From the NCBI GenBank assembly GCA_946965045.2, contig OX337242.1, forward strand, positions 2,480,001-2,544,000: 64,000 nt of DNA. The letters are read 5' to 3'. The first letter of the stretch is position 1. Each line of letters begins with the position of its first letter. The translations under genes and the position numbers were made by a program. Below are positions 17,402 to 64,000 of the stretch, in pieces. Under the pieces are notes generated by a model, which saw nothing but the letters and a program-made list of their open reading frames with translations, was not told the origin of the DNA and did no database searches. Source of the stretch: Epithemia pelagica. Its lineage: Eukaryota > Protista > Bacillariophyta.

Positions 17402-18145
17402 CTAGTCTTCCTTTTTTCGTTCCGTCGCTGCCGGCTTTCGGTCATCATCGCCCTCAGTGTCCTCGGTGGCGTTGTCCACGACTGGTTCGGCGGATGTTGT
17501 TGGTCTATCGACGGGGTTCGGCTCCATGTTGCAGACGCTATCATCATTCGGATTCATATATTCACCTTCCAACGTGTCCATGTGTGCTATCGCTAGCGTT
17601 GGCGAACCCCCAGATGTAGGATTATTTGCAGATGCAGGGGGCAACCGATGCGTTCCAGAATTCTCCAGACTTGATATGGAACCGGACTCTAAACTGACCA
17701 CCGCTACATCTTCTACTGGTGGGTTTTGCGGCGGAGGGGGATCTTGGTGTGGTGGTGGATGTTGTGGAAGCTGTTGGATCTGGTTTTGGTTTTGCTGTTG
17801 TTGCTGCTGAATGTAAGTCTCAGCTTCTTGAGTAATTTCTTCGTCCGTCACGATACCATCTGCAACAGGCACCTGGTAGCGGACAAAAGCTATCAATGAG
17901 TTGATAGCGATCAGCGGCTGCAAAAAATGCACAGGGATTGTCCGCAAGAAGGTGCGGATATGTTGCAAAGCTTCGTCTTTCTGTCTGGTGGCCATTGCGA
18001 ACTCCGATACGTTGCTGTGAGGAAACGTGGACGATGAATGCGTTGTTATCACCGTACCCGATTCTTCGCTGTCGTCGAGAAAACCCTTGAAAGGATCTCT
18101 CGTCACCCACGCCAAGTCACGATGCTGAAAATCGAGCGCACTCAT
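17402..18145 (-). CDS. Cassette gene C, copy 2
   Basis: Intact paralogue of C1 that differs mainly in a ~25-aa patch. Confidence 0.5.
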   Translation of the reverse strand: MSALDFQHRDLAWVTRDPFKGFLDDSEESGTVITTHSSSTFPHSNVSEFAMATRQKDEALQHIRTFLRTIPVHFLQPLIAINSLIAFVRYQVPVADGIVTDEEITQEAETYIQQQQQQNQNQIQQLPQHPPPHQDPPPPQNPPVEDVAVVSLESGSISSLENSGTHRLPPASANNPTSGGSPTLAIAHMDTLEGEYMNPNDDSVCNMEPNPVDRPTTSAEPVVDNATEDTEGDDDRKPAATERKKED

Positions 18146-18477
18146 CAATGACAACAATTGGGAAGCTGAGAGAAACAGCAGACAGGGAGCCTTGATTCCA
18201 AGAATTGTGTCACGCCTTCCTTGATGAAGCGTTATTTGTGACAAGAAGAGATGTGTACACATCATGGTGGTGTTACCCTTGACACCCCAGCGGTGAACGC
18301 TTCCAACCGGATAGTCGGACGGCGCCGATTGTTACGAAGACTGATGAATAACCCCTAGCGGTATACCCCTTTTTGCTAGAGCCGCTGGGGGTTCGAATCT
18401 GTCTTCCAGGGGCAATGGAGCTAATCACAACTCTCACTGCTTGAATAGTCCGATGAAACTCCCATAGATACCATCAT

Positions 18478-40025: not shown

Positions 40026-43000
40026 CTATGTTTCACACTCATCTTCTGCAACTAGTTCGTCTTCATCATCATCATTCATAGTACCCAAAGACGCGTCGTC
40101 GTCCTCCTCGTCATCGTCACTGTCATCGTAGTAGTCCTCGTCATCGTCATCGTCACTATCCTCATCTTCCTCAGGGTCTACAACAAGTGATGTCCCATGT
40201 GTCATCTGCTCTACATCGTCAATTGGTGTCCATGTACCAGGTTCAAAAAAATCCCAGTCATCGAGATCTATAATATCTGCCAATTTTTCTACCGATTGTT
40301 CGTCTGATTTGTTTTCCTCTCTTGGCTGTTCCGCACCTCCATTGCTAGCTCCATTGTCCGTTGGTGACTGTCCAGCAGTAACAGTGACTTCCATTGATTG
40401 TCCGGCACCTCCATTCTCATCTCTTGACTGCTCAGCACCTCCATTCTCATTCGTCGACTGCTCAGCACCTCCATTCTCATTCGTCGACTGCTCAGCACCT
40501 CCATTCTCATCTCTTGACTGCTCAGCACCTCCATTCTCAATCGTCGACTGCTCAGCACCTCCATTCTCATCTCTTGACTGCCCGGCTCCTCCACTTTCAT
40601 TCCCTGTCTGTTGACCACCTCCATCGTCTTGTATACCCGGAATTCTGCGACAAAATTCCATTGTACCCTTATTCTTTGCAACCCAGGTTTTCCTTGCCAG
40701 CGCATTTTCCTCGCTGCAATTTGCATTACCTTCTGTTATATCACTGTATTCGTATCGACACATGAAAACCATGCGTCGTTGCAACCATCTCGCCATTGGT
40801 TCTAGTCTGGACCTCCTACCCTTTCCCCTATTTGTACTACCACCCCTTTGTGTTCTGGAAAAATAGAACGTCTTAAATAAACTATTGAATGCTGTAACAG
40901 TGTAGGTGAGTAACCATTTTCAACAAACAAGAGAACCTCTTTCGCTTTCGCAGGCTACTACTTACCTTCCCACCCCTGTTGAGCGTGGGATGACAGGTTG
41001 CGCCAGTGGATCAGGTATTCCATTACGTGACCACTACCTATCAAGTGTGCGTAGTTGGTTATCCCATTCTCACCACACAAATCCACCCAAGTTGCAAAAA
41101 ACTCATCCGCCTTGCGCTGATAGTCAAAAATCTCACTGTCTGTCATGTTGGTTTTCTTGTTAAGTCGTTCCATGGAAATGACATAGTCGGCTACACACTG
41201 CTTCCACTTGACTCGTTTCTCTGGGTTTGCGATACATATATCTACCAGTTCATCAAACTTGGGCAACATTCTTCGGATGCGGACGTTGTCCATAGTGATG
41301 GTTCCAAGTTTACGCTTCTTCTTCTCATACGGTGCTTTCCACTGCGTCGGCATATCACTCGTTCCCAATATGGACTGGTTCATACATTTTTGGACTCGCT
41401 TGATGAAGTGGTTACATCTCTTTATTTCTGAATTGTCATATTCTTCAGGCATCCAATCGAACTCTTTGACCTTTGCACTTGCCAGACCGTGTCGCAAACA
41501 CATGGTAAGAATCTTGATTCCCATGCGATTCTCCATATGGAGAATGCATGGGACCGTGTCCATCATATAGACAATTGCGGTAGCAGTCTTGGACTGCTTA
41601 TAATCATCTAACACCTTCTTTGCTTGGTAGTAAATCCACTCTTTGACATGGTGGGCCTTGAGTCGTCGTTGTCGTTGCTCTAGTGTACCATGCACATCTA
41701 GTTCTCTAACCACCAGATCATTGGTTATGAACCTCGCATATTCCAGACGCTTGGCAACATCGGCTTTGCCTAGATCAAAATGGATGGACTTGATGTTCCC
41801 CTTCTGAACTTTGGTTGGGTCCATCCTGGGGTCCTCTTGCATAATCAACTCGGAATCACCCCATATATCAGTTAGACTCTCGTAGATGCTAGGCATCTCC
41901 TTGACGAAGTGGTCCACTTCCTTTTGTAGACTGTTTACATGAGCCCTTGTACACATCTTGTGATGTCTACATACCCAGTTTGTTTTTCTGGAATGTCCTA
42001 GTTGCGAGCACAGGCTGCAGTCTTCGACACGTCCTGTGGGGAGATGGAGTTCTCCACTTCGTACAGTACATTTCGAACAAGGGAAGTTAACTTGTTGAGC
42101 GGCCCCACCACGCCCAAGTAGCTTCCACTCGCAACTCATATCGCAATTAGTGCATATTTTGAGCGGCCATACTCCGAATTTCGTGGGAAGTACTTTTACG
42201 GCAGCTTCACCGATCTCTTCGATCATGTTCCGAAAGATCGATCGCACTAAGCCCTTGCTCTCTGGACGACAAACACACACAACCGGAAAACAACTGTTAC
42301 GTGATTGGGCAAGAGGGTTGGACATGTCGTTGAACTTCAGCCCTCCCAGTGTATGGCTTAAGTTTTTAGTGAAAAGAGCGCCGTCCAAACGCTGTGCCAA
42401 CTGGATGGGCCGCCAACGAGCGTCTCCGTACAGACAATTGCCTGCCACTAATATTCCTGCCATAACATCGGCTGCCCGGAAGGCAAATCCTTCCGACCCA
42501 TCAGTCTTGTGCCGGAAAAGTCGGTAGGGGCAGAGAAGACTCCCAAACTTCTCGACTTCTTTGGCTACATCCTGGATACAAGAACTACTTGGGATAAGTG
42601 TGTGTGTATTAGCAACTCCATTGCTTTCCACTTGTCGTAGGACTTCAATGCCGCCAAGGTTTAGGACGCCACCTGCGAGATCCATTTTCCGTAGAATGTT
42701 AAACAGTGTGAAGACGTAATCGCGTACATATTTACGAAATACACCATATGCATTCTCGAACATGAGCCCATTGTGTATGGATTTGTCAAGGCACAGTTGT
42801 GCCACGTCTCGGAAGAATTCTCCTGCTGCTCTACTCGTGTCATCCATCCTACTGGTCCTTGATACGAGGATTTCTCGGATATGTGACACCAGTTTTTCAC
42901 AGTCCTTTATGTCGTAGCAAGAGGCGGGGAGATCAATCTCTTTGCTCGTCGCTTTTGTTTCCGCGTCTTTATCCCTCCAATACCGAAGGTCATCTGATCT

Positions 43001-44245
43001 ATTCTTCAGCTTTCTTCTACAATCGGTCAAATCGTCGGTTACTTTCTTCAGGGACTTGCGATAGTCAGACACAGCTTGATGTGCTTGTAGCAGATCCTGT
43101 TCCAAACAATGGATCTGATTGTGGAGACGTGTGATTTCTTCGTTGTCTTCTTGTGTCGAATCCATGTTGGCAGATTCGTCAGCGTTATCTAGAGTTTCAT
43201 TACTACTAAGGTACGTCCTATTTCTTGTCTCTTCAGTTGTTGATGAGTCGCCTTGCTCATCTCTGGACTGCTGACTCTCTGCATTTTCAAATGGGGGCAG
43301 GTCATCTAATTCTTCATTGTCGACATCAAATGACTCGGCTTCATCGACTGCATGGTCTCGAGAATCATGAGCATAAAAGCTGTAATGGCTGAGGGGGTCC
43401 TGGAAAAGAGGTAAGTTTAACAGAAACTGTGGAGTTTCTTTCTTGTTTGCAGCGTCGTTGTATTTGTCTTCATCAATCTCACTAATGAGGTCGTCATCGT
43501 CTTGAGGAACATTCCCTTGGGTTGGGTTCTTAGTTTCATCCTTGCCTTGTGGATGCTGGTACAGAATGCTTTCGAGAGTGGATGATGGAGGTGGAGGTTT
43601 GATCCTTGATCGTTTCCTCCTCTGTCGTTTCTTGCGTTTGCGAGTCGTTCTCAGGGACTTGTCGCCATTGCATGGTCGACAAAACAAATCAATTGGCGGT
43701 GGTTTTGGAGAGTTCTTCTTCTTTGGGTCGATGTATGTGGGATGCCAGAAATTTGTGTGCTTGGATCTACAGGTGTATCGACCGCCTATTGCCTTGCGGT
43801 TTATCTTGTGAGAAGGACGGAAACCAGACTCGTCGTCTGCCTTTTTGCATCGGCTACAGAAGGTGTATCCTGGGTAGCGTTCCTCGCGGTCTCTGCCATA
43901 AACAGAGCAGGGGACATGGTCTTCGTCCATAAAATCAAGAACAATCTGGGCAATCCGCTTTCTCTCAACAGAGTTTTTTTCACATGTGATATTCGATTCT
44001 TTGCGTCGGGTCCTTGTCTGTTTGTTGGGAGATGGAAGGAGCTTCTGGGCTTCCTCCGCTTCGCGTTTTGCCAGTTCGGCGAGAATTTCTTCTTCCGTCT
44101 TGAACCTGCTATCCTTGGCACCTCCATCGTTGGAATCTGATGCCGTCTCTTTTTCTCGAAGGCGACGAGACTTCCGAGAACCTTCAGTGGAAGCGGTGGG
44201 TTGCCTCTTCTTTGCGTAGTTCTTCGGGGGCTTCTGTTTTGGCAT
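40026..44245 (-). CDS. RAG1-core/Transib-like DDE transposase (~1380 aa); join(44245..40966,40891..40026)
   Basis: RLDGA (D), NCDMS (D), PCSKC, PCILH..R, NYAHLIGSGH and QQGWE|AFN (E) parallel RAG1 D600/D708/C727,C730/H937,H942/E962. A 74-nt GTAAGT..CAG intron fuses the two ORFs in frame. Confidence 0.82.
40405..40590. repeat. 30-bp tandem repeat (about 6 units) encoding NGGAEQS(R/T)(D/N/I)E in the transposase tail
   Basis: Period-30 units starting ccattctca at 40411, 40441, 40471, 40501, 40531 and 40561. Confidence 0.9.
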
Positions 44246-45013
44246 TCTACGAGGATAGGATAAGTAATAATACAAGTATTACTCGACTCAAATGGCGCTG
44301 TCCTCATTGTTTCATCGTCGACTTCTCTCGGTTGGAGTTCGTACTTCCGATGACTCAACTACGATTGAAAGGCGATTAGGTTGTTATATGTTATTCATTG
44401 ATGTATATAAATTAATGCTGTAGAGGTGTGCACGTGTGAGTGGGTGTGCTGTGCTCGCATTTTTTCCCCAAAATTTTGTTTGTGTGTGAAAGGTGCCAAT
44501 TGGACCCGTTGTATCTCGACGAATATTACCTACTTTTGTCATCGGACAGAAACGTAACATTGTGTTGTATTTAAAGTGTCTTGGACCGTTGGCCGATGAC
44601 AAAGTTAGTGGGTACTGCATTGGCAGTTTAGAACCAAAATCAGATGGTCGTTGGGAATGAAATTTTGGTGGTTATATTTAACAAAGGATGAGCCACTGTT
44701 TGGGTCATAGTTGGTGGGGGTTTCTGATATGACATCTTGGTGGATCTTGGACGTTGGGGTCTCGCCACGCGCGCACAATATGCACAGAATGCTGCTATTG
44801 AGAGGTCCGCAGAAACAAGGACAGCAGACAGACTAATCCTTAACCTTAACGTACCAACTCCACCGCCTGTCACACCTTTGTACACGCCTGTCACACCGTG
44901 TACACGCCTAAGTAATCGTCAAAGAAATAACCGTTCTCTTTCAAATCTGAAAGTCTTCAGATCGGCATTGGAAGATATTTCGCTATTGCATTCAATTCAT
45001 TGAGTATCTAGCC

Positions 45014-50483: not shown

Positions 50484-50937
50484 CTCTCCAGAAGTTGTGG
50501 TTATTGGAATGAAAGGATTGCTTTGGTGAAGCTGTTGCTGCTGATACAGATGCTGGTGAAGCTTGTGCTGCTGCTGTTGTTGATGAGAAGTTGAGGTGTG
50601 TATTGCTGTGGTGTGGAGAAAAGGAGGGATAGGACAGGATTTTTCTTCAATGTGGGTGGCAGTTGGTCTGCGCAAGTCGGCCTGGTTGGCAACCGTGCAC
50701 AGTTTTGGCTACATTAAGGTTAAGGATTAGTCTGTCTGCTGTCCTTGTTTCTGCGGACCTCTAATGGCGAATTATCATAATCCCCATCACTCTAAGAGCA
50801 CACATTTAGCTAGTAGACCAGTAACACCAATCCAACCTAACGCTCACTCACACCATACAGCATACAGCCGGTCATCACAAAACAGCACTTACCATTCATC
50901 ATTCTCCCTATTTGTTGTTGAAGAAGAAATCAACACC

Positions 50938-52584
50938 ATGTCGATCATCCACCACAAAAGTGACAGTGACAACTCCATTCTTCACTTTACCTCGACCTGT
51001 GGCATACAGTCCTCCCTGATCTGCTGTCAGTCCTACGCTTATTTCATCGCAGACTGTCTGACATCGTGCATATTATCACCACCCAAAGAGCAATTACAAT
51101 CCATTCTTACCGCCACAGCTTCCTGGTTGATCCGCCAACAGCAATGGATTGATGTTTCTTCTTCAATCCAATATGAAAATAATCATCCGTGTATCATTTT
51201 TCAATACACCTTCGAAGAAGTCCTTCATCAAGTCAGTTCTCATATGCTTCAGTGGCTGAATGGAGAAGACGATGAAAACCTTGTATCCATTTCAGAAAGC
51301 ATGGACCCCGCCAACATCATACTTGAATTGAAATGCATACCTCAGTTTGCCGTTTGTGAATGCAAAGGTTGTTTGGAATGCACATCGTTCGTCGTTGGAG
51401 AGACAAATGATTTTCCCAAAGACTCCATTACCGACCTGATTCTCTTTTGGATCCAACGCAACCAAGCTCATTTTCTTGTAACGGACAACAATTCTGGTAA
51501 ATCAATGGAGCCTAAGTCACTGGAGAGTATATTTCCACTTCTATCCCAATATATTGGACGGCAAATCGATACCACAAGGGTATCTCAAGACGCAAGAATC
51601 TCCATGGCTTCCAACAACAAGTTCAGTCGCCACTCCAGTCCGTCTCGACATAAATATCAAACTCGACAACAAAATCATCTACTATCTCAGGACATTTTAC
51701 TGAGTTCCAAATCACGGACAAAGCCAAACTACGATGACGGTCGTCGTTTCAAACACGGAGACCCATTCAAAATATCCCCATGCAGAATTTCCTGTCCCAA
51801 TCTACCTCTATGTCCTAGTGATTCAATCATTGCTGACAGAGTGACTCTCATTGAAGATCTGAAAGAATTCCACGAGATAGCCAAGATGTCTGGGCTACAT
51901 TCTCCAAGGGACGCTTGGGAGGACTGGATGGATTGTGGGGCAACAGACAAGCTTGCCGACAAAGCTTTTATGTGTCTCATTATAATTCTTATGAGCTCCA
52001 GCACCACCGACAGTCAATTGGCGGCATTCATTCCACAAATGTTTTCCAGTGGACTTACATCAGCGGACGGTGTAATAGAGGTATCACAGCGGATTGGAAT
52101 GGATGCCTTTTGTGCCCTCATCTCTCCAGTTGGTCGATTCCACCAAAATGCAGAAAGAATTGTACATGCGGCATCTTATTTTGTTGTCAAACACAAAGGC
52201 CGCATTCCATCTGATATATCCATCCGAGAACTCACCTCTTTATTCGGAATTGGATACAAGACAGCACAGATCATTGTCTCAAGTGCATTCGGTCGAATGG
52301 ACGGAATTCCTTCGGATGTCCACGTCATTCGCTGGTGTGAGGCACTCAAATGGGTGCCACCACTTGCAAATGACGGTCTCCTCTGTTCCAAGTGCATTGA
52401 ACAATGGCTGCCTAAATCCAAATGGCATCTTATCAATCCACTTTTTGGGGCGTTTGGTCAGCTCATTCAAAATCCTGATACACGGCCACCTCTCTTGAGC
52501 CTATTGGAGGAGAAGGCTTCGGATCTGGTGAAATCTGTCTTTCTCAAAATGCTGAAGGCATATGGCAAAAACAAATTCTTCTAA
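50938..52584 (+). CDS. HhH-GPD DNA glycosylase/AP lyase (endonuclease III/NTH-like) with a long unknown N-terminal region; hAT cargo
   Basis: ILMSSSTTD, ELTSLFGIGYKTA (HhH with catalytic K), IPSDVHV (catalytic D), EQWLPKSKW..INPLFGAFGQ; no 4-Cys FeS motif at the C-terminus. Confidence 0.85.
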   Translation: MSIIHHKSDSDNSILHFTSTCGIQSSLICCQSYAYFIADCLTSCILSPPKEQLQSILTATASWLIRQQQWIDVSSSIQYENNHPCIIFQYTFEEVLHQVSSHMLQWLNGEDDENLVSISESMDPANIILELKCIPQFAVCECKGCLECTSFVVGETNDFPKDSITDLILFWIQRNQAHFLVTDNNSGKSMEPKSLESIFPLLSQYIGRQIDTTRVSQDARISMASNNKFSRHSSPSRHKYQTRQQNHLLSQDILLSSKSRTKPNYDDGRRFKHGDPFKISPCRISCPNLPLCPSDSIIADRVTLIEDLKEFHEIAKMSGLHSPRDAWEDWMDCGATDKLADKAFMCLIIILMSSSTTDSQLAAFIPQMFSSGLTSADGVIEVSQRIGMDAFCALISPVGRFHQNAERIVHAASYFVVKHKGRIPSDISIRELTSLFGIGYKTAQIIVSSAFGRMDGIPSDVHVIRWCEALKWVPPLANDGLLCSKCIEQWLPKSKWHLINPLFGAFGQLIQNPDTRPPLLSLLEEKASDLVKSVFLKMLKAYGKNKFF

Positions 52585-52627
52585 TATATAGATTTTTACG
52601 GTACTTTGTACACTATCCTTCACAATT

Positions 52628-53997
52628 TCATTCACTCGCTGAATCTTCGGCCTCATCTTCTTCCCTATTGTCGTTATCGCCCGTGTCATCCCTCTCGCCT
52701 TCGTTACTATACTCTGCGTCTGAATCATTTTCCTCACTGTGGCTATCACCGACGACTTCATTCAACATATGCTCCAGGTTACTTGCCACATTTTCCTCTG
52801 TGTCAGAGCCGGCCTCTGAATCTTGAACCCGTACCGCCGACTCAGGAGTCGCACCTTTCTTCTTCTTTGCCCTGGGTGAGCGTCGGACTGACTGTGATTC
52901 TCTATCCTCTTTGGACTTTATCCGGGATGATGGTTTTTCTTAGACCCGCTTTTGGAACCTGTGGACTTGAGTTTGGTTTGTTTTGCTTTCTTTTGGACAG
53001 GTGGTGTCTCATTCGCTTTTCTCTTCTTTGAACCACTCCCACTTGTTCCAGTAGTCGGCTCAACATTCGTGCCTTTGTCTTTGTCTTTGCTTGCCGCTCT
53101 TTTCTTCTTTTCTTCCGCTGCCAGTTTTCTTGATTTCTCTAAGCAATCGAGCCGTTCGATTTCTTCTCGTAGATGAAAAGTTATGGCCTCGTCGTTGTCA
53201 ATATCTTCATCTTCGACAACGGATTTGTCCTCCTCATTGTCACTTACATCCGACAAGTCAATCTTCACCACTTGAATGTCGTCAGCTGTCATGGGAACTT
53301 TGGCTTCCCCTTCTCCGTCGCCCAGATCAGGGAAATATTCATAGGTTGGATCGGGAGAGTTCGTTGCAAGAGGGTCTTGTTCAGACGACTTCTTCGCTTT
53401 GGAGTTGAAGTCGTCCAAAGCCTTGGTGGCTTTCATTAGCAACATGTTGCGAAGATACTCGGCTTGCTCCGTGTCTTCGAACAAATGCGGAGTCTTCTTC
53501 TTCTCATTACCAACTGCTGTTGCATGTGACGGATCAGTATCCTGCGTATTGGACGGTGTATCATCAGTGTTTCCGACCTCGCTTGCCTGGACCTCGGTTG
53601 CCTGTTTTGCCAGATTGCCTGTATCCGTGGACGTTCCCCCAGTGCTGGTTGCAGTCTCTGCAGTCTTCTCCACCGCCTTGTCGTCATCATCATTGTCGAT
53701 GGCCATCACTTCTGCTTCCCGTTTCTTATTCTCAATAGCAATCTCTCGTTGGACAATCTCGAGGCAAATCTTTCTGGTTAATTTCTCCATCGCCCTCATC
53801 TCGAAATTCTTGGCTGTTGTTTTGGATTAAAGTTTGTTTTGTTGAAACCAGGAACCGAGTGAAAATACTCGTTCCTGAAAAGCATTAGTGGCAGGCTTTG
53901 TAAGCCAAATCACAGCCGATGGGAACACGTGGGGAAAATTGTCCTTGTTGTGATCCCACCACGCCATTACATCAAAATACTCGCCAACCACTAAGAA
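52628..53997 (-). pseudogene. hAT transposase, 3' part (dimerisation domain and long charged tail)
   Basis: YFDVMAWW..FPHVFPSA..LTKPATNAFQERVFS; in-frame TAA at 53827-53829 and a frameshift near 52935. Confidence 0.85.
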
Positions 53998-54500
53998 CAC
54001 TGCACACATCTTTCCTTCTGTTTGAGTACTGTTTATGTTAATCAACACCACTACACTGAATAAGAACGGCGCTCGCGCTCCCTATAAGATTGCGCTTATT
54101 CAGTAGGCCGATTTTCCTATTCACATCAACATGTTCTTTATTCAGACAGTATTCACCATGCAAAACCTTATTCAGAACCCGATACCCAAAACAGTAGGCT
54201 CTATTCAGTATGTCAATGCGTTATTCAACATAAAACCATATTAATCAACAACAACCCACTGAATAAGACCTGATGCCTGACCTCTTTTATTTAGAAGGGC
54301 ACTACTGAATATTATCTTAATTGGATAAAGGCTGTTGAACAAGTATTCGACAGCGAAGTGGAAGTCGAAGTTATAGTAAGAACTTTTCGTTCCACAACTT
54401 TTGAGGAACAAAAGTCAGCCCTATTGGCACCTTGATATATAGTCCGTACTTGCACAAATCCATCAACCAACAGCATATCAGTACTAACAACGATCTTAAT

Positions 54501-54875
54501 TTAAGCTTTGGAAGACGATTTTGTATTTCTACGACTATTTTGTGTTCGAGCGACTCCACCTGTTTCTTTTGCCTTTTCCATCAAAAGTTTTGCATGACAA
54601 GCCATGCAAAAGGCGTGATCACATGAATGATCATGTTTTACAGCGTTAGGGCAAAACATCACCGGATTCTTCGAAGTCACCTTAATACCACCCGGACCAC
54701 CGAATTTCTTGTTACATGTAGAGTTCATACACTTCCTGGGCCAAGTCTCATTATATGTGTAGTAGTCCAGTGTAAAGAAGGATCCAGTGTCTTGAACCAC
54801 GTAACAAGATAAGTTGTCATGTTCACAGGCTGCTTCCACCAATGGACTTGTATTCTGTTCAGTCCCCTGCTCCAT
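54501..54875 (-). CDS. Small Cys/His-rich zinc-finger-like protein (cargo; may be the last exon of a longer gene)
   Basis: CEH..CY..CxxxxC..FCxN..CxHxFCxxC, a RING/PHD-like ligand pattern. Confidence 0.5.
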   Translation of the reverse strand: MEQGTEQNTSPLVEAACEHDNLSCYVVQDTGSFFTLDYYTYNETWPRKCMNSTCNKKFGGPGGIKVTSKNPVMFCPNAVKHDHSCDHAFCMACHAKLLMEKAKETGGVARTQNSRRNTKSSSKA

Positions 54876-54915
54876 ACACCAACATTGTTAGAAGCTTCAT
54901 ACAATAATCCAGTAA

Positions 54916-55875
54916 TCAGAACCTTTCTCTTACCTTTTCCTCTCCAACTTTCTCCTTTTGACTGTTCTCAATTCTTGGACCCTGACGACCAATCACTTCC
55001 TTACTGATGCGACTTGAACTCCCTTTACGACCCTCATTTGTTCGTCGCAATGATTTCTCCTTTGACTGACTTTTCTCCTTGGATTGACTTGCTTTTGGTA
55101 GAGTAGCATTGCTACTCTCTCGATTACCTGAATCTCCTGGTAGAGTAGTACTCGCTTTTGGTAGAGTAGCAGTGCTACTCTCTCGATTACCTGAATCTCC
55201 TGGTAGAGCAGTACTTCCACTCGCCGGACTTGCTTTTGGTAGAGTAGCAGTGCTACTCTCTCGATTACCTGAATCTCCTGGTAGAGTAGTACTTGCTTTT
55301 GGTAGAGTAGCAGTGCTACTCTCTCGATTACCTGAATCTCCTGGTAGAGCAGTACTTCCACTCGCCGTATTGACCGCGTTGCATAGAGTAGTATTGCTAC
55401 TCGCCATATTGGAAAGAGTAACATTGCTACTCTTTGATGCCTTAGAAAGACAATCATTGTCTTCTCCCATAGAACTCCGTTGTCGTCCAGTATTTGTTTC
55501 ACTGGTTGCATTTACAATTCCCAAAATTGATCCTTCCGGGTGCAGTGTCTCTGGTCCATGCATGACGCCAATAGGAACCTGTGTCACCAAAGCGGAGGGC
55601 TGACAGTCATTATCTATGACTGTATCGATTGCTTGCTGCGTGCCTGGCGAAAACAAGGCAGGCGATTGAACATCATCCTGTCTTTGTTGAATTATATCAT
55701 CTGTATCATCCACATCAGTCATTTCCGTCTCGTTCTGCGCGCCCCCTTCACAGGTTTCGTTGTTTCTCGTCATCGTAGTGTTTCGTGCGCGTCGTTTCTG
55801 GTCTCCGTTGTCAGCAGCACCTCTGAATTTCTTAGCCAGTTGTTCTATGAAATCATCCTCAACATTTACTCCCAA
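54916..55875 (-). CDS. Low-complexity cargo ORF with 4 x 21-26-aa repeats (LPGDSGNRESSTATLPKAS)
   Basis: Minisatellite at ~55088-55366 with a 141-bp higher-order period, in frame. Confidence 0.45.
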   Translation of the reverse strand: MGVNVEDDFIEQLAKKFRGAADNGDQKRRARNTTMTRNNETCEGGAQNETEMTDVDDTDDIIQQRQDDVQSPALFSPGTQQAIDTVIDNDCQPSALVTQVPIGVMHGPETLHPEGSILGIVNATSETNTGRQRSSMGEDNDCLSKASKSSNVTLSNMASSNTTLCNAVNTASGSTALPGDSGNRESSTATLPKASTTLPGDSGNRESSTATLPKASPASGSTALPGDSGNRESSTATLPKASTTLPGDSGNRESSNATLPKASQSKEKSQSKEKSLRRTNEGRKGSSSRISKEVIGRQGPRIENSQKEKVGEEKVRERF

Positions 55876-55974
55876 CTCGTCTTATAGAAAGCTTCTCGCA
55901 TTTTCCAAAATATCCTTTATAGTCACAGACAACTGTTAGAAAAACTCATATGGATTCAATTGTGTAACACTGTT

Positions 55975-56847
55975 TCAGATACGTACCGATGACATTGTGG
56001 CAACATATTCTTCGAGAGGTTCTGCCTTTTTCTTCGATGTGACGAGATAGAACATCTCATTGCGATTGTACCAGAATTTCTTGTACTCCTTGTCATTGGA
56101 CTGTCCGGTTGTCAATGACAACGACCATCCCGCATGTTTCAACATAGGAATCATCAAACCACCCACAGTTTGAGACTTTGCCGATCTTCCAACCGCCGAA
56201 AACCCTCCTCGGTCATACTGACTAATTCTAGTCCGTTTGTTATTTTCGTTGTACTTGGGCTTGGTTTGCTTGAGTAAGTACATCTTATTCGTGAACAACC
56301 AGCTGTCAATGATCGAAGTGAGCCACGAGCGGTCTCGGTGAAATCGGTGTACCAGTTCATAAACGAGATTCATGTTCTCCTGGTTGAATTCCATCTTCAC
56401 CAAGACAGCTCTCATATCTGCCAACGTGACGGGCTTTGAGGTTTTACCAAGTAAGGTGAGATTCATTTCCTCGGCAATATCGCAAATCTTCTCTGTATAC
56501 TTTACCACAATAAACGCTCTCAGACTATCTCGTGTGTTTTGAATCTCTTCCAACATAGCGTCACCGTCTGGCACCGTTCGATCACTGAGTCCATCGGTAT
56601 TTCTATTCTTCCGATATTGCCATAAGAGTTCGGCGTCTTTGGCAGAATTTGGATTCTTGCCGGAAAGGGGATTGAAGTAATCCTTTGGATAAGGAAGAAA
56701 ATCCGCAGGATACAATCCGGTCTGCTGTACCACTTCTGTCCCCGGTCGAGATGTCGAGGCACCAATTAGGCTTGTGTACTCGATCTCAGGTCTACCATTG
56801 TCCACCACGCTTCTAATCCGTTCTAGATTTCTTTCGCGATCTGTCAT
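55975..56847 (-). CDS. Unknown 290-aa cargo protein (possibly spliced to the downstream ORFs; TnpA-like position)
   Basis: Intact ATG ORF, divergent from the transposase. Confidence 0.55.
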   Translation of the reverse strand: MTDRERNLERIRSVVDNGRPEIEYTSLIGASTSRPGTEVVQQTGLYPADFLPYPKDYFNPLSGKNPNSAKDAELLWQYRKNRNTDGLSDRTVPDGDAMLEEIQNTRDSLRAFIVVKYTEKICDIAEEMNLTLLGKTSKPVTLADMRAVLVKMEFNQENMNLVYELVHRFHRDRSWLTSIIDSWLFTNKMYLLKQTKPKYNENNKRTRISQYDRGGFSAVGRSAKSQTVGGLMIPMLKHAGWSLSLTTGQSNDKEYKKFWYNRNEMFYLVTSKKKAEPLEEYVATMSSVRI

Positions 56848-57297
56848 TTTGCTTTGCTGATCAGTAGGTGTCTACCGTTTTTCAGTGTTGTATCCAAAAT
56901 TTGGAGACCGTTCAAGAACGCAGGCATCGTCGCGCCTGCATCTAACTGCCGCCATATTCATTGGAATAAATGGTTTAGCCGGCGCACTATCGTGACTGAG
57001 TCGATAAATTTTTGAATAGTGACATGTTAGAGTCACTATGTAGACGATTAGCGTTACATAGGTCATTGTTTGTCAACGATTCGTGACTTGTTTATTCTAA
57101 AGGACTCCAATCCCCAGAAGTAACAGTCGATAGGGAATGAATTCCAAGATTAAGACAAGACCAAAAAGTTGGTCGCAGATATACTGGAAGGAGGAGGTGC
57201 ACCATGGCAACTTGACAAATCCGGTCTCGACGCTGGTTCATCAGATATAGGCGATTGTGTTGGACCTAAAGCCTTAAATTGTGTCCTCGACAGCAAT

Positions 57298-59985
57298 ATG
57301 ACTTCCGTTGAATCAATAATTTGTCATTTTCCATGTGTGAAATGCTCTGAACTCTGTCCACTAGCAGTACACCCAAACTCCCCGAGTGATTTTCATTTCG
57401 GATTGTACCATGGACGATGTTCTACTGCCACTTGTCTACAACAAGACCAACCATTTTTCATATGTTTCCCATGCCTGCAACTGCCACTGCCATTCAAAGG
57501 TCATCATAAGGGTTACATAGCAGAATGGCGTGCTGTACAACGCCATGCCCAATCAAAATTTCATCAAAAAGCCATGGAAAAATGGCGCGCATCGAATGCC
57601 CCTTCCCGATTTCAAGGCCATATCGAAACAACAGTGGATACAATGCAGAATGCGTCAGATACTCTACCATTGGACCCTACAGAGTGCTGTACAGAGGACA
57701 TAACTGACGATATACATACAAACGAAGATTTTGAACTCAAGTCTCTTGACCAATTATCGTCGCTGGGCTTTGCATCGGGTTCTAAATCACCCCAATTCAT
57801 TTGGGATAGTTTGAAAGGACATGGCAGCGGACTGAAATCATTGACAGCCCGCGCTTTTGCAGTCCCATTGGACAAAGTCACGTTACAAGAATCGGAATTT
57901 TCAATCTTGTTATCATCTCTTCTCATTGAGTTGACGGAACGTCAACGAGAGTTACTTGCCGAAATTTTGTTACTGGCTGGGAACAGTTCCAGTAAGGATT
58001 TATCCATATTTCAATCAACCAGGTTGCCTACGTCTACAGAAGATTTTGACAGGTTTTACCTTAAAGGCAAAGATAGCATCATGCAAAATCTTCCGATACC
58101 AATTTTGCAAAGTGCTGCCGATGGCTCCCATGCTCGAGTTTCTCTTCCAGATCTTATAGCAAACGAGTTGGGGAAGGCCCAGAGTTACGATGACCTCCAG
58201 TTATCAGCCGAACTACAAGTACAAGAGTCAGACCGGGAACCCAACGATGCCGCCACTCCTAACGGACGACGGCTTTTGTTATCATTACAACAAGATTCTA
58301 CCAATGACCCCCATAATCAATGTGTATTCAATCTCTGGCTTAGGGAGTGGCGAGACGACTTCGATCCTAACAACACGAAGTCGTCTCGCAACCAAGTCTG
58401 GGTGAATACGTTCACAATCGGGCCCGGTATTGACGCAACAAACGGAGCAACCACATACTTCATGGCACTTGGGGCGAAGGGCGACGATCATTCCGTTATT
58501 GAGAAATCATTGCTGCAAGAAATCCAGGGATTCAATTCTGCTGGTCACGATATATTCCACGGAGGATTGAAGAAGGTAGTCCGTGTTCGTCTCGGGAAAC
58601 TTGTGACTGGAGTGGACAGACCAGAACGAACGGCCATGTTCTCAGTTGGTGATCATAATGGTTCGTTTTCCTCATGTTGGGGCGTATCGACTCGGATTGA
58701 CAACAGATTGAAGGAAAATCGGCTTCCCTCCTGTTCCCGATGTAGAAAAAGACGCATGGTTGAATTGGGATTATGTCATCCAGTACGATCAGACAACAAT
58801 CGTTGTTCAGGACCACAATGTCAAAATTGGAACCTCTACCATCCGACACTCTTCTTTTCTGCACCAAAGAATTATCCAACTGTCTGTGATAGATCAACTG
58901 GTGCTCCAAAACCAGCACTTGGACGCCCAATATTCAATGTCAAACGGAATGCCGGTTCTCAAACATCTCAAAATGGAGGTACGACCGAGGAGAGAAGAAA
59001 CAATCCGACACGGACAAAGCGAAATCGCTCTGAGTCTCAAGATGAGGGACCCAAACTAAGATCTCATCCCATTTCAATACCATGGCTCAAAGATGCGGTA
59101 CTATTTGCCCATCATAACATGAAGACACCGTTGTCGTCAGTCTTACCTAATGGTAAGCGGTTTTGGAACAAGGCTCAAGCCAGTGCATATTTGCGTAGTT
59201 GTGGCTGTACCAACAAACTCATCGATTCAGTCTATGCTTCTGCCAAGAATGCTGATACCTTCCCTCCCTTTCCAGAGACATGGATAGACGAACAGGGCCT
59301 GGAACGGTGTCACTTCGCACCAATGCATATGATCTTCCTAGGGAATGTCAAAACCGTTCTAGAGATTCTATGTACATGGATGGGGTCGCATGAAACTTTG
59401 GCAACTTTTGGGAAACAGATGAATACTTATCTTACTCATGTCAAGATGTTGCGATGCACTCGATACTTTTCATCACAACCTTTGTCCACTTCAAGCTGGG
59501 GAACAGGGACATGGGTTAGTGAAAACTACCTGTTTGCATGTCGAATTCTCAAATTCGTCATGTTATTACCATGTTTCAAAAGTGATCGGCTGCATCGAAG
59601 AGAAGACTTTGCTTTGGAATATCAACAGGTTTCCAGATTCGTATGTGCTGCAAATGTAGCTATCAGTTGGATCATGACAAACCAGAAAGAGATTCATAGG
59701 TTACCAAACGTGGTCAAGGTGTTCTTGGATACTATGTTTGAAATGGATGTCCTAGTGGGGAGTGACGGTCAATCTGGATCTGAGTCTGTCGGGTCTGCAA
59801 AACTAAGTCATGTTATGAAGAGCAATTCACTCGGTCTACTCTTCATTTCTGAGTATCATGACGATATGGGACCTGCTTGCCTCCACTGGGAGGGGGGTTT
59901 CGAAGGAGAACGGAAGATACAGCAGGTTAAACCTGCTTTGTCCATCAAGCATTGTTTGACGAATGGTGTAGATGATATGTTCTAA
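57298..59985 (+). CDS. CMC/EnSpm-like DDE transposase with N-terminal Zn fingers
   Basis: EWRDDFDP (D), GVDRPER (DxPxR), PMHMIFLG, WEGGFEGE (E); CxxC and C2H2-like motifs upstream. Confidence 0.78.
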   Translation: MTSVESIICHFPCVKCSELCPLAVHPNSPSDFHFGLYHGRCSTATCLQQDQPFFICFPCLQLPLPFKGHHKGYIAEWRAVQRHAQSKFHQKAMEKWRASNAPSRFQGHIETTVDTMQNASDTLPLDPTECCTEDITDDIHTNEDFELKSLDQLSSLGFASGSKSPQFIWDSLKGHGSGLKSLTARAFAVPLDKVTLQESEFSILLSSLLIELTERQRELLAEILLLAGNSSSKDLSIFQSTRLPTSTEDFDRFYLKGKDSIMQNLPIPILQSAADGSHARVSLPDLIANELGKAQSYDDLQLSAELQVQESDREPNDAATPNGRRLLLSLQQDSTNDPHNQCVFNLWLREWRDDFDPNNTKSSRNQVWVNTFTIGPGIDATNGATTYFMALGAKGDDHSVIEKSLLQEIQGFNSAGHDIFHGGLKKVVRVRLGKLVTGVDRPERTAMFSVGDHNGSFSSCWGVSTRIDNRLKENRLPSCSRCRKRRMVELGLCHPVRSDNNRCSGPQCQNWNLYHPTLFFSAPKNYPTVCDRSTGAPKPALGRPIFNVKRNAGSQTSQNGGTTEERRNNPTRTKRNRSESQDEGPKLRSHPISIPWLKDAVLFAHHNMKTPLSSVLPNGKRFWNKAQASAYLRSCGCTNKLIDSVYASAKNADTFPPFPETWIDEQGLERCHFAPMHMIFLGNVKTVLEILCTWMGSHETLATFGKQMNTYLTHVKMLRCTRYFSSQPLSTSSWGTGTWVSENYLFACRILKFVMLLPCFKSDRLHRREDFALEYQQVSRFVCAANVAISWIMTNQKEIHRLPNVVKVFLDTMFEMDVLVGSDGQSGSESVGSAKLSHVMKSNSLGLLFISEYHDDMGPACLHWEGGFEGERKIQQVKPALSIKHCLTNGVDDMF

Positions 59986-60017
59986 TAGACATCCACTCGT
60001 TTCACTTGTATTATAAC

Positions 60018-61424
60018 TTAAGGTCCTAAGATAGGAGGAATCTGGATCATATTGTTCTGATACGCCCATACTTGTACTCGAGTGGAGAGTTTTTGTGTTT
60101 TCTTCAGATATCCATTGTCTCTAAGAAGTCCCAGTACGTTGGTAATTTGTCGAAAGTTGAAATTGGGAATCGCAATCACCTTCTCGTGGAAAAACTTGGA
60201 GCTCTTCCATTCTGTGTTTGGAGGAGAGTCAATCAGAGAGAGTATGACAGTGAATAGAGCCTGTCGGTCGGTTTCTATGTCGTCTTTCTTGATAAATGGC
60301 GTACTGGTAGTCCAGGTCAACACATCTGAAACAGTACGTTGGTTGACAATGTCCTTTTGCCATTTAGGTTGGGGAGTCGATCCAATACTATCAATAGGAG
60401 TATTGTTAATGAGGGGAAGCAGACGATTTTTTGTTCCTTGACGAGTGCCTTTGATGCGACGAGATATAAAAATGACAAGACCCTCTCCCCATTCATCCAT
60501 AGATCCTGTTTTGGGACGGATTTTCTGTAGTATCTTTTCTCGACAAAGGGGAATGTTGTCAAGATTATTGGCAACTTCTTTTATGTACCGATAGGGTTCG
60601 CTAACCATGATGGTCGTCGAAGCACCGCGTACATCCATATTTGCTTGTCTGTCAGACAGTACCGACCGAAAGGCTGTCCCACATAATATCATTCCACATT
60701 GGAACCACTTGCCCATGGTAATGAAGGCAACTCTCTCGATAAATGTCTTGGGCTTGGTGTTAGTCAGAACCATGGTGTTGCAGCGACCACCTGTTAAGAT
60801 CTCATCAACGATTATTCGGAACCCATGACGTTTTGACAGTGCTGAAATGGCCATAAGTGCCCGGGAACTTAATATGCTTCCATTGGAAGCTAGTATAAGT
60901 TCGAGGAATAATGTCGAAATAGGTTCGCATATACAGGATTGGTATATGCATCGTGCGTGTAACATCCTCATGCATTCGTCTTCATAGATGACCAGGGAGT
61001 CATCGTCCATTGTTCCCGGAATGTGGTAGGGTAGTGCAACGGTGTGTTTCCTTGCAACGGGAGATAGATGTTCTGTGTCGGGATGTGCAATGAATGAGGG
61101 ACCGTCGTTAATCTTGAACGTAGTAGTTGTCCAGGATTGTAGCGGGCCCTGGTCTCCGGCCACGTAGGAACCGCATGCTACCAAAACCGTGGAGGTGTTA
61201 CCTTCGCAAAGACTTGATATAGCGAAAAGGTTGGCATCAGAGCCGTTCGGGGTGAGCTTTTCAAAAGAGAAATTTCCTTGTGTGGTTTCAAGGACGCATT
61301 GTTTTAGTGCCTCTAGTGCTTGATAATCATCATCAATGAATGCAGTGTCGTATTTTCTTTTGTATGAAGATTGATCAATCAAAACAAATTGTTTTCCCCA
61401 ATTGTTGGCCAGGTCGTCTGACAT
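60018..61424 (-). CDS. Class-III PLP-dependent aminotransferase-like protein with an extra C-terminal helical/wHTH-like segment; CACTG cargo
   Basis: TPNGSDANLFA, FLELILASNG, IIVDEILTGGRC and FITMGKW (PLP-lysine position) follow the class-III motif order. Confidence 0.75.
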   Translation of the reverse strand: MSDDLANNWGKQFVLIDQSSYKRKYDTAFIDDDYQALEALKQCVLETTQGNFSFEKLTPNGSDANLFAISSLCEGNTSTVLVACGSYVAGDQGPLQSWTTTTFKINDGPSFIAHPDTEHLSPVARKHTVALPYHIPGTMDDDSLVIYEDECMRMLHARCIYQSCICEPISTLFLELILASNGSILSSRALMAISALSKRHGFRIIVDEILTGGRCNTMVLTNTKPKTFIERVAFITMGKWFQCGMILCGTAFRSVLSDRQANMDVRGASTTIMVSEPYRYIKEVANNLDNIPLCREKILQKIRPKTGSMDEWGEGLVIFISRRIKGTRQGTKNRLLPLINNTPIDSIGSTPQPKWQKDIVNQRTVSDVLTWTTSTPFIKKDDIETDRQALFTVILSLIDSPPNTEWKSSKFFHEKVIAIPNFNFRQITNVLGLLRDNGYLKKTQKLSTRVQVWAYQNNMIQIPPILGP

Positions 61425-62075
61425 ATTGGGATTGTTACAAGCGGAAAAGCGGACCGGTAATGAATATACCAAACAAAGGGTTGCAAAATGTGAGAAGAAC
61501 GCGATATTACGTAGTATGGAAAGTGTGAAAGTAAAATGGTTGTTGACCCGGCGTGATGTGTTCCAGTCTGGCTCGGCAAATTGCTAAAATTTCAAATGGA
61601 AGTATATAGAGAGGGGAACAAAAATGATAGAGTCCGGCATGGACGTTATGGTTCGTAAAGTCCAATCTTTGTATCATATTTTAAGTAGCAGTCTTGCTTG
61701 CACTATGTATCACCACGCGCGAGATTTCGGAACTTTGCGCCAAATTGGCGATAATGGAGTAAGTGGCATAGAGTATAAGGGGTGCTCTACGATATGTGAG
61801 AGATACCAGATTATATGACGGTTGGTGTGTGAATTTGAAATTCACAAGAGTTGGTTTGAAAGAAAGATTAATTACTACCCGGCGTATATTATTCTTCTAT
61901 GTAGGGAAAATGTAGGGGAATAATAGACCAATGGTTTGTATTGGGGTTTAAATGTAGAATTTGAAATTGTGCATTGTCCTGTTCTCAGGAACCCAAATTG
62001 CGCAAACCAGGATACTTTTTTGTTGCTTGGTTCCTCATATAAGAAGTCTCCAAAGAGAGAGGAAAAATATTGACA

Positions 62076-62693
62076 ATGGCATTGAATATCGATTACTTCA
62101 CTGGCAGGAATAAGGTGCCGGAGAAAATCCCACCGAAAATCGTTTACTTTTTGGCATTGGGCGAATCAGATCGCAAGAAGGGTTTTGAGTTTCTCCTGTC
62201 TTCTATGGTTACGGCGTTGGGGGATCCTCGGAAGGGAACTGACTTCGTTGAGTTAAAGAAGGACAAGGATCGAGTTTATGGATTCCCTACATTCATCTCT
62301 TCTTTATGTGGAGGGTTGGACAAGTCTGGGGATGGGTTATTGTTGGTACAACGTCAGTTTTACAACGTTGGGTTCAATCCGGGTGCGAAGGAGAATTTTC
62401 AACTTGGAAGTGACTTTCGTTGTCGTAGTGCATTCCTCATTGTTGTACGAGAGAAGGTGGTCGGCAAATTCCAAATTCTTCATCGCGAGATCTTCCACTT
62501 CGGTGACGACGGGTCAATGACTGTCAAGTATTGTGATAGCTGTGATCCTAAAGAGTATCCGAAGGAGATTTTCAAGATGCTGAATGTGCATGTGGAGGAT
62601 GCTTTTGTCGCGTCGACTTTGTACGGAATCAGTAAAGACAGTAAGGTTACCAACGATACGGTAGCAATCACGACGACTAATAATGGAATGTAG
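62076..62693 (+). CDS. Unknown 205-aa cargo protein
   Basis: Intact ORF inside the CACTG element, divergent from the aminotransferase gene. Confidence 0.5.
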   Translation: MALNIDYFTGRNKVPEKIPPKIVYFLALGESDRKKGFEFLLSSMVTALGDPRKGTDFVELKKDKDRVYGFPTFISSLCGGLDKSGDGLLLVQRQFYNVGFNPGAKENFQLGSDFRCRSAFLIVVREKVVGKFQILHREIFHFGDDGSMTVKYCDSCDPKEYPKEIFKMLNVHVEDAFVASTLYGISKDSKVTNDTVAITTTNNGM

Positions 62694-63149
62694 TGATTTA
62701 CGGTATACTATAGTTGATTGTTAAATCTTCTTCTCGTCGTTGTGTGTCTTGTGGACTCCTCTCTCGCTCTCTCTCTCTCGTCACAGCATGTCGACGACGA
62801 GACGAGAGAGATGTGAGAAAGACAACGCGAGAGATATGAGAGAGAAGAGAGAGAGAAAGAGAAAGATTTTGTACTATTCAGTATGATGGCGGTGTATAGT
62901 AAGTTTTATTTGGAATGTTGTGTTGTATAAACCAAATTCGGTATGGCATTGTTGGTTAGCCTTTACTCGGTATTTGGTTGACCAAATAAGTTGATAATCA
63001 GTATGATATGTTGAATATACAGCCTATTCAGTATGTAATGTTGAATAAAATTTAGATGTCGAAATGGAGGTTTATTCAGTACAAGAAAATCTGAATAAAA
63101 ATAAAATAGCGTTGAAAAGGTCTATTCAGTAGCAAAGTAGTGTGCAGTG

Positions 63150-64000
63150 AAGTCACGGTCCTGACAAGCCAACAGGAACCTGGATTTGTCAGCCGGTTTC
63201 CACTTTTTATAGTCGTTCGTGTAGGCTTCTGTTGGGTATTTGGCAATGACCTCGTTCCATTTAGTGTCAATGTCCCGCTTGCAAGCCCGACAAAAATCGC
63301 GCAAACTATCTTCACAAGTCTGTTTCAGCACTTTGGCTATTCGAGATTCTTCATCGGCAAGCGAGGCCTTTCCCGTTATACTCAACAATGCACGTTCATT
63401 GAGTTCTTGGGACTCCCTGAACGCACGGAATGGGTTGAATTTTTGGAACGGCATATTCGTTGTGGTGGAAGGATTGGTGTTTTGTTCAGGTCCAGACGTT
63501 GTGGTGGTCGAGTGAGACGTCGTAGTGCCCGTCATAGTGCCGGTAGTTTGTTGGGCTTGTTTTGATAACAAGGAACCGATTGTTGAATAAGCCTTGTTGC
63601 TGAACTTTTTGACCATGTCCTTCAAGAAAAGGTCCTTTACTCGATTGGCATCGTTTTGGTCATACACACCCAACGACTGGAAGAATTTCCCAAACATATT
63701 TGTTGTCAACGGGTGTGCCATCAAGGCCTTTTCAGAATCATCGTTGAGAGAGCCACCATCGTCTCTTTTGCGTCGACCTTCCACCAAAAGTGTCTTGAAT
63801 TCCGCGAGAATCCGACGGATAAGTTTGCGTGGTCCACTTTTCAAGTCCTTGAAAGACATTCCCACTCTTTCCAATTGGGGAATGGTTTTGTCCCCGTTCC
63901 ATCTCTTGTCTCTTGGTGTTGTAAGCGTCACAGGGAGACATCCAATTGCTTCTTTCGTAGTTTGCATCCGGTGTGTGTGAGCACGGGCAAGATAGATCTG
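63150..64000 (-). pseudogene. hAT transposase, upstream part (open to the window edge)
   Basis: Joins in frame to 53995 when the CACTG element and one TSD are removed; ALMAHPL motif. Confidence 0.75.

Follow-up and report, generated by a model that had tools for sequence, protein, structure and literature searches.

Related systems

Transposons seldom retain enzymes beyond those required for movement. Exceptions such as the fungal TET/JBP oxidases have hinted at how mobile DNA counters host silencing; the genes of these dioxygenases are carried by fungal KDZ, Plavaka, EnSpm, hAT and Harbinger elements (PMC12730594). Here, we analyze a stretch of 64,000 nucleotides (nt) from Epithemia pelagica (contig OX337242.1, positions 2,480,001 to 2,544,000; referred to as the window in the following), which contains a 9.15-kb transposon with CACTG termini at 53998-63149. 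This transposon is a member of a cut-and-paste family whose elements measure 9-10 kb. In its RAG1-like lineage, a complete pyridoxal 5'-phosphate (PLP) aminotransferase fold with a probable DNA-binding domain attached has been retained as long as the transposase itself. The kind of transposon is known. In the literature that we searched, however, no eukaryotic DNA transposon was described as having a conserved gene for an aminotransferase fold plus winged helix among its regular parts, and no paper connected any aminotransferase or PLP enzyme with such transposons (Repbase itself was outside this search).

The transposon kind is represented by the CMCT clade (EnSpm/Mirage/Chapaev/Transib/Plavaka/RAG1), whose transposases share the signature order D, D, C(2)C, H(3-4)H, E and whose elements show CA...TG termini and target duplications of 2-5 bp (PMC12730594). 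The window element is alike with regard to its termini (CACTG...CAGTG) and its 2-bp duplication, and it shares with En/Spm the presence of subterminal repeats and of several genes per element. RAG1 and Transib provide the best structural matches of its transposase. On the other hand, the transposase lacks a match to any Pfam transposase family, as do 33 relatives, it may belong either inside or beside CMC, and no described lineage that we found in the literature carries an aminotransferase-like gene.

With regard to the gene pair, En/Spm-type elements provide a first parallel, since a second, separate protein (TnpA) binds their subterminal repeats and ends. Both systems thus combine a second element-encoded protein beside the transposase with subterminal repeat arrays. 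No relation in sequence or fold to TnpA is expected, however, and repeat binding by the aminotransferase-like protein is hypothetical. The transposon-borne TET/JBP genes are alike in that an enzyme gene is stably kept beside the transposase in CMCT-type and other DNA transposons. They differ in enzyme class and in that their substrate, 5-methylcytosine, is known, while the activity of the element protein is predicted.

A similar architecture is found in the bacterial MocR/GabR regulators, which combine a winged helix with a PLP sensor of aminotransferase fold (PMC6677901, PMC6917764). The combination of a winged helix with a dimerising fold-type-I PLP domain would be shared by the element protein, and MocR/GabR set a precedent for a PLP fold that senses an amino compound at DNA. 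Unlike the element protein, they are bacterial and start with a winged helix of the GntR type, which is followed by a class-I (AAT-like) domain; the element protein has the reversed domain order, a class-III fold, a eukaryotic transposon as its home and no GntR match. We therefore use the comparison as an architectural analogy and do not claim homology.

A class-III aminotransferase fold with a conserved PLP site

The aminotransferase-like gene is convergent to the transposase gene, with 32 bp between both stop codons in the window, while the stops abut in the related locus L001. Residue numbers of its protein are counted in the open frame of 484 amino acids (aa) that starts at 61472; the ATG is found at 61424. 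The respective features are the following.

60018-61424, minus strand: aminotransferase-like gene, 468 aa from the ATG (open frame of 484 aa, start at 61472)
60363-61424, minus strand: predicted class-III aminotransferase fold, residues 1-370
60708-60710, minus strand: codon for K255, i.e., the lysine predicted to form the Schiff base with PLP, invariant in 45 sequences
60060-60275, minus strand: C-terminal winged-helix-like domain, residues 400-471, predicted from the model topology

When searched alone, the window protein matches the Pfam family Aminotran_3 (PF00202) below threshold (E 0.009, 15.2 bits vs. a threshold of 30.5) and GabT among the PDB sequences (E 0.02). A word search provided 88 relatives besides the window's own protein with 27-70% identity, several of which represent clusters of 77-273 near-identical members that are scattered across many contigs. 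Clusters of 273, 119 and 204 relatives are dispersed in this way. PF00202 is matched by 38/45 aligned relatives (E<0.01, best E 3.4e-9), and the family profile retrieves class-III enzymes only from the PDB, with taurine:2-oxoglutarate aminotransferase as the best match (E 1.9e-6). All three parts of the class-III fold are present, i.e., the N-terminal segment, the large PLP domain and the small C-terminal domain, and an Atlas structure search with the aminotransferase model returned nothing but class-III clusters. Identity to any solved class-III enzyme is just 10-16%. Structural matches are tied across many substrate classes, with lysine epsilon-aminotransferase nominally on top, such that no substrate can be read from the structure. 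The element protein differs from known class-III enzymes (GabT, lysine epsilon-aminotransferase, omega-transaminases, BioA, dialkylglycine decarboxylase) in this low identity, in its sub-threshold Pfam match when taken alone, in its C-terminal extra of about 110 residues and in being encoded by a transposon.

The motifs NGSDAN, DEILTG and MGK are present in the window protein. Among the 45 relatives, G77, N81, Y103, E191, D223, E224, T227, G254, K255, R282 and R350 are invariant; the conserved motifs read G77-S-D-A-N81, Y103, E191, D223-E-I-(L/M)-T-G-G-R and T252-M-G-K255, followed by R282-G-x-S-T286 and R350-x-L-P. Within the HMMER alignment, D223 corresponds to Asp239 of E. coli GabT, and K255 (in an ITMGK motif) is found 32 residues downstream. 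D223 is thereby assigned as the Asp to the pyridine N of the class-III PLP site. Based on motif positions, we take K255 to be the Schiff-base Lys, Y103 the ring-stacking aromatic residue, and G77-S78 and T286 the phosphate-binding Gly-Ser and Thr, respectively. R350 is presumably the carboxylate-binding Arg of the class-III R-x-x-P-P-L motif. K255, D223, G77-S78, T286 and Y103 are all invariant or nearly so in the 45 sequences. That is, the gene encodes a complete class-III aminotransferase fold in which all PLP-anchoring residues and the position of the carboxylate-binding Arg are conserved. Both the model and the 45-sequence alignment are in accordance with the original prediction, made from the window's letters, of a class-III aminotransferase-like enzyme with intact NGSDAN, DEILTG and MGK motifs and PLP Lys.

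This conservation bears on two alternatives to the accessory role that we favour below. According to the first, the protein would be a non-catalytic scaffold whose fold forms a stable dimer or tetramer and pairs the DNA-binding tails in order to join the element ends, with PLP being structural or absent. Class-III aminotransferases are obligate dimers, which would suit such a function, as would the separate end-binding protein of En/Spm and the subterminal repeat arrays. However, the Schiff-base Lys, the pyridine-N Asp, the Gly-Ser/Thr, Thr286 and the substrate Arg are kept at 25-30% identity, which exceeds the needs of a scaffold, and we regard this function as very unlikely.

According to the second alternative, which widens the original prediction, the winged helix would tether an active transaminase to the element, where it would convert a carbonyl or amine on DNA or chromatin and thus help to evade or undo silencing by the host. 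Formyl-pyrimidines, abasic-site aldehydes, histone lysine epsilon-amines and bound polyamines would be conceivable targets. The complete catalytic set is invariant, including the Arg position that holds a keto/amino acid co-substrate, and the nominal top structural match is lysine epsilon-aminotransferase, though tied with many others over many substrate classes, which also counts against a specific assignment. Further arguments are a HhH-GPD glycosylase-like match within the window (E 6e-4, below threshold) and the DNA oxidases of the TET/JBP type on CMCT and other fungal transposons (PMC12730594). Phage PLP enzymes, too, act on bases in polymeric DNA, i.e., the PLP decarboxylases of thymidine hypermodification, but these are modelled on tryptophan synthase beta and are not class-III enzymes (PMC8989533). 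Within the element, no partner kinase, oxidase, glycosylase or transferase is recognisable: none of its open reading frames (ORFs) matched a base-modification partner (Pfam on six ORFs, NCBIfam on four), nor is a phage-type 5-hydroxymethyldeoxyuridine DNA kinase or amino-acid:DNA transferase found among them. Furthermore, we know of no class-III enzyme that acts on a macromolecule. We thus consider catalysis of this kind unlikely. For its more specific form, in which a DNA-tethered PLP transaminase edits bases or chromatin amines at the element (e.g., formyl-pyrimidines to aminomethyl bases) to prevent silencing, our expectation is lower still, i.e., we consider it quite unlikely. If true, PLP chemistry at DNA or chromatin would be new biochemistry, and with base or chromatin editing, the protein would be the first known aminotransferase whose substrate is nucleic acid or chromatin, and a type of DNA modification new to eukaryotes would be added.

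A C-terminal domain of predicted winged-helix topology

Residues 371-484 (about 110) are located outside of the aminotransferase fold and begin with a linker helix in the model. The tail model shows helices at 400-415, 425-433 and 440-452 as well as strands at 456-461 and 466-471, mostly with a predicted local distance difference test score (pLDDT) of 83-96. This H-H-H-beta-beta order is the topology of a winged helix with a hairpin at 456-471. The isoelectric point (pI) of the tail is 9.6, while helix 3 and the wing reach 10.6, and a profile of 21 tails shows an invariant Arg and an invariant Trp in the hairpin.

When the tail profile is compared with the PDB, all matches are sub-threshold: the MarR-type ZitR/AdcR is matched over recognition helix and wing with E 0.05, a winged helix of MCM with E 0.12. 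Feature leads from the Atlas (0.80-0.84) include the winged-helix families DsrD, MarR_2, BlaI, Fur and DpnI_C. Searching ten C-terminal tails with Pfam at E values up to 10 resulted in one MCM_C match (E 0.21) and in no match to Z-alpha, GntR or MarR. Based on these data, the C-terminal domain is a probable winged helix and presumed to bind DNA, and the aminotransferase fold is fused to a C-terminal domain of this predicted topology in most lineages. The extra C-terminal domain had been described as basic and helical before, which is reflected in the pI and the model. With regard to the structure prediction that had been suggested as a check, PLP fold and winged-helix topology are both found in the model, while matches to known winged helices stay sub-threshold.

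One metagenomic relative (L011:8715-10694, minus strand) shows a longer aminotransferase-like ORF of 645-660 aa. The family profile covers its residues 16-472, beyond which the protein extends by another approximately 170 C-terminal residues.

Linkage to the transposase and co-divergence

We compared the gene neighbourhood of aminotransferase-like homologues in eight loci, drawn from three ENA assemblies, one NCBI assembly and one Logan run. The gene is located beside a transposase homologue in the window element as well as in 8/8 loci reached in this way, and the pair is arranged tail to tail in most of them, 0-110 bp apart. When loci are reached from the transposase instead, 2/4 carry the aminotransferase-like gene, both with mid-range homologues (35-37% identity). 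Overall, 12/14 elements that we examined have the pair side by side. CACTGCA... termini are found in every related element whose ends were located. The 2-bp flanks are AA/AA for the window, CG/CG for L001 (element at 8234-18308, 10,075 bp) and TA/TA for L002, while L005 shows one mismatch (TT/TC) and L006 no match (TG/GA). Furthermore, two accessory ORFs of the window element, o290 and o124 (see below), recur in five related loci.

The identities of both proteins are correlated over nine pairs (Pearson 0.90, Spearman 0.75), and their clades coincide. Between the window and L001, the nonsynonymous divergence (dN) is 0.23 for the aminotransferase-like gene vs. 0.40 for the transposase, with saturated synonymous divergence (dS). 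The gene is thus a long-standing core gene of the element that is under strong purifying selection and required by the element. It is no captured cargo, since it is found beside the transposase, has diverged in parallel with it and is more conserved than it.

This is where the original prediction has to be corrected, i.e., its term 'cargo' does not fit a core gene that co-diverged with the transposase. As for the homologue search and gene-neighbourhood analysis named there, the homologues at the loci examined adjoin a homologous transposase within CACTG-ended elements, unlike ordinary host genes, and the refuting condition set beforehand was not borne out. Capture of host genes by DNA transposons does occur, and the fold does belong to a metabolic enzyme family, such that a captured host metabolic gene, either a passenger or of benefit to the host but without a part in the life cycle of the element, had to be considered. 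However, 11 related elements other than the window's carry the gene (transposase identities of 25-72%), the gene is better conserved than the transposase with which it co-diverged, its product is remote from canonical class-III enzymes (10-16% identity), and it encodes a conserved DNA-binding-like extra domain that the class-III matches lack. We consider a capture of this kind extremely improbable. As a mere passenger, the gene was rejected as a candidate given the dN values of 0.23 vs. 0.40 and the co-divergence. Both the passenger and the scaffold readings are weak because they fit the conservation pattern poorly.

Subterminal repeats and a proposed DNA-bound accessory factor

The motif TATTCAG/CTGAATA is found 21 times in the window. 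Twelve of these copies are located in the two terminal 400-bp regions of the element, while the 8.35-kb interior has none.

53998-54400, no strand: left subterminal region, 7 copies of TATTCAG/CTGAATA by motif count
62750-63149, no strand: right subterminal region, 5 copies of TATTCAG/CTGAATA by motif count

Subterminal repeats vary by lineage, i.e., TATTCAG in the window, TGAATAA in L001 and ACCCTAAA in L002. Within the right subterminal region of the window, a (CT)n/(GA)n-rich inverted pair is located at 62759-62866. In L002, a palindromic site of 25 bp (GGTAGACC-N9-GGTCTACC) is repeated seven times at 9316-9826, within about 700 bp upstream of the aminotransferase-like gene; the copies are spaced by 59-74 bp with one gap of 137 bp. 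From its sequence, the array looks like an operator array of a dimeric DNA-binding protein. Upstream of the window's aminotransferase-like gene, there is no counterpart of the L002 palindrome array.

We favour an obligatory accessory protein, i.e., a dimer that would bind PLP, carry a pair of winged helices and act at element DNA, and hold this to be the probable role, if by no wide measure. The pair of winged helices would follow from the obligate dimerisation of class-III enzymes, and the bacterial MocR/GabR are similar by analogy. Such a factor would bind repeated sites in the element, for which the subterminal repeats are the prime candidates, and once bound might help or gate transposition or expression, as TnpA does for En/Spm. 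Its PLP could either sense an amino compound or serve catalysis on DNA or chromatin at the binding site. We favour an accessory factor because En/Spm needs a repeat-binding second protein and the element has such repeats. Our confidence is not uniform over the parts of this proposal: it is far higher for a core PLP-fold accessory gene, and lower for the binding of subterminal repeats. If PLP acts as a sensor, eukaryotic mobile DNA would have independently reached the architecture of a MocR-like metabolite-sensing PLP regulator.

Several observations weigh against an accessory DNA-binding factor. DNA binding, PLP binding and activity of the aminotransferase-like protein are predictions from sequence and model, and the winged-helix call combines a predicted topology with sub-threshold matches (E 0.05 or worse; Atlas 0.80-0.84). 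The C-terminal regions of L003, L004 and L007, i.e., of the most distant clade that has the aminotransferase-like gene, could not be aligned to the winged-helix domain. Furthermore, 5/21 tails have an acidic pI of 4.9-6.5, and another two come close to neutrality (6.8). The repeats could instead be bound by the N-terminal zinc-binding domain of the transposase or by the zinc-finger ORF of the element, and the conserved carboxylate-binding Arg together with the full catalytic set suits a true enzyme as well as a sensor. Two of the most distant transposase relatives, L009 (NCBI GCA_031546005.1) and L010 (JGI 3300008263), with transposases of 22-30% identity (22-26% for the homologues from which these loci were reached), lack the aminotransferase-like gene within contigs of 8.0 and 8.7 kb; given this absence, the gene may mark one branch only of the transposase family. 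Among RNA runs, none was found to contain the stretch. Finally, the window copy lacks the C-terminal approximately 170 residues of the transposase and may therefore be non-autonomous.

A transposase of the CMCT type

57298-59985, plus strand: transposase, RAG1/Transib/CMC-like, with a catalytic Asp-Asp-Glu (DDE) triad (open frame from 57169, first ATG at 57298)

The 938-aa transposase has no match in the PDB or NCBIfam sequence searches, and no Pfam transposase family is found for the protein or its 33 relatives. We aligned 34 homologues with 22-54% identity, in which the DDE triad D396, D483 and E785 is invariant. Here, D396 is part of W394-x-D396 in WRDDFDPN, D483 of VDRPER and E785 of WVSENY. 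Also invariant in the 34 sequences are C522-x2-C525 and H720 (in CH-x4-MH), with H715 four residues ahead of H720 in the notation of the consensus CHYAxMH. In the AlphaFold model (pLDDT 76.7), a beta-beta-beta-alpha-beta core carries both Asp residues: D396 is in strand 386-398, D483 follows right after strand 469-482, and E785 is in helix 783-797. A Foldseek comparison with the PDB shows RAG1, amphioxus RAG-like or Transib transposases on all ranks from 1 to 47. Since the order of the residue signature and the structure searches agree, we conclude that the 938-aa protein represents a DDE transposase of the CMCT type, from a lineage without annotation. Given that 0/34 members match a Pfam transposase family, the family extends the RAG1/Transib/CMC transposases by a separate branch that lacks annotation.

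Compared to L001 and the family consensus, the loss of the conserved C-terminus is due to a deletion of about 0.5 kb, seen when window 59914-60017 is compared with L001:11405-11950. The transposase of L010 has a SAP domain, and both L009 and L010 hold other small ORFs with weak HA and Chromo matches. A RAG1-like ORF elsewhere in the window (40958-44275) shows no relation to the element transposase that is detectable by BLAST.

Element boundaries and the interrupted hAT element

53996-53997, no strand: left copy of the target-site duplication (AA), a single AA in empty-site contigs
53998-54020, plus strand: left terminal inverted repeat (CACTGCACAC...), 10 terminal bases exact
63127-63149, minus strand: right terminal inverted repeat, pairs with the left arm
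63150-63151, no strand: right copy of the target-site duplication (AA), from excision and empty-site contigs
53830-53997, minus strand: distal part of the interrupted host ORF, hAT C-terminal dimerisation domain (PF05699, E 8e-8)
63152-63967, minus strand: proximal part of the interrupted host ORF, joined in frame upon excision

Within the 64-kb window, the 10-mer CACTGCACAC has exactly two occurrences, namely at 53998-54007 (plus strand) and 63140-63149 (minus strand), i.e., at both tips of the element. The inverted arms at the tips comprise 23 nt and are 83% complementary. AA is found on both sides (53996-53997 and 63150-63151) and forms a 2-bp target-site duplication. No further copies of the CACTG element were found within the 64-kb window.

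When 53998-63151 is excised in silico, the minus-strand ORF 63152-63967 continues in frame at 53997 and below, with 56 further codons followed by a stop. The resulting host frame reads ...CQDRDF/LVVGEYFDV...ERVFS... across the join. Its distal piece matches Dimer_Tnp_hAT of Pfam (PF05699; E 8e-8, 32.4 bits vs. a cut-off of 21.4), whereas residues 1-270 of the 339-aa hAT ORF are without any Pfam match, such that the C-terminal dimerisation domain alone is recognisable. Contigs with an empty site from three public DNA runs follow the left flank up to 53997 and continue with 30 letters that equal window 63152-63181 at 29/30 positions. These contigs are paralogous hAT copies with a single AA and provide independent proof of the element ends. 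Thus, the exact ends with a 2-bp duplication, as read from the window before, are confirmed by the CACTGCACAC tips, the flanking AA and the empty-site contigs, and the same holds for the in-frame restoration of the hAT ORF given the excision fusion and the PF05699 match.

The contig depth in run X1 is 392 for the hAT flank vs. 64 for the element interior, i.e., about six times higher. The hAT flank shows 14 differences to its paralogues in 1091 letters (about 98.7% identity), and given this low number the insertion is recent. The interrupted hAT-type element (window 52500-53997 and 63152-64000) is multi-copy.

Accessory open reading frames

Six ORFs fill the CACTG element. Beside the 938-aa transposase ORF and the aminotransferase-like ORF, these are o124, o319, o290 and o207.

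54501-54875, minus strand: o124, a Cys/His-rich small ORF for a probable zinc-binding protein, kept in L001, L002, L005, L006 and L008
54916-55875, minus strand: o319, Ser/Thr-rich with internal tandem repeats, a putative coding ORF with weak similarity in L001
55975-56847, minus strand: o290, a conserved accessory ORF with counterparts of 32-65% identity in L001, L002, L005, L006 and L008
62070-62693, plus strand: o207, an accessory ORF divergent from the aminotransferase-like gene with a 71% identical counterpart in L001 only

Pfam and NCBIfam provided nothing useful for o124 and o319. When applied to the accessory ORFs of L001-L005, Pfam resulted in sub-threshold noise apart from one weak RING match, which belongs to the L005 counterpart of o124 (E 0.004). 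For o290, there is no assignment from Pfam, NCBIfam, PDB or the Atlas, whose EF-hand leads are below 0.9 and uninformative; a word search gave 4 close relatives, 0/4 of which have a Pfam domain. Sequence searches of Pfam, NCBIfam and PDB found no family match for o207, which shows a dN/dS ratio of 0.06. Outside of the element, a 606-aa ORF adjoins the hAT remnant (window 50764-52584, plus strand). Its C-terminal third has a weak match to HhH-GPD, i.e., an endonuclease III-like glycosylase (E 6e-4, under the Pfam threshold).

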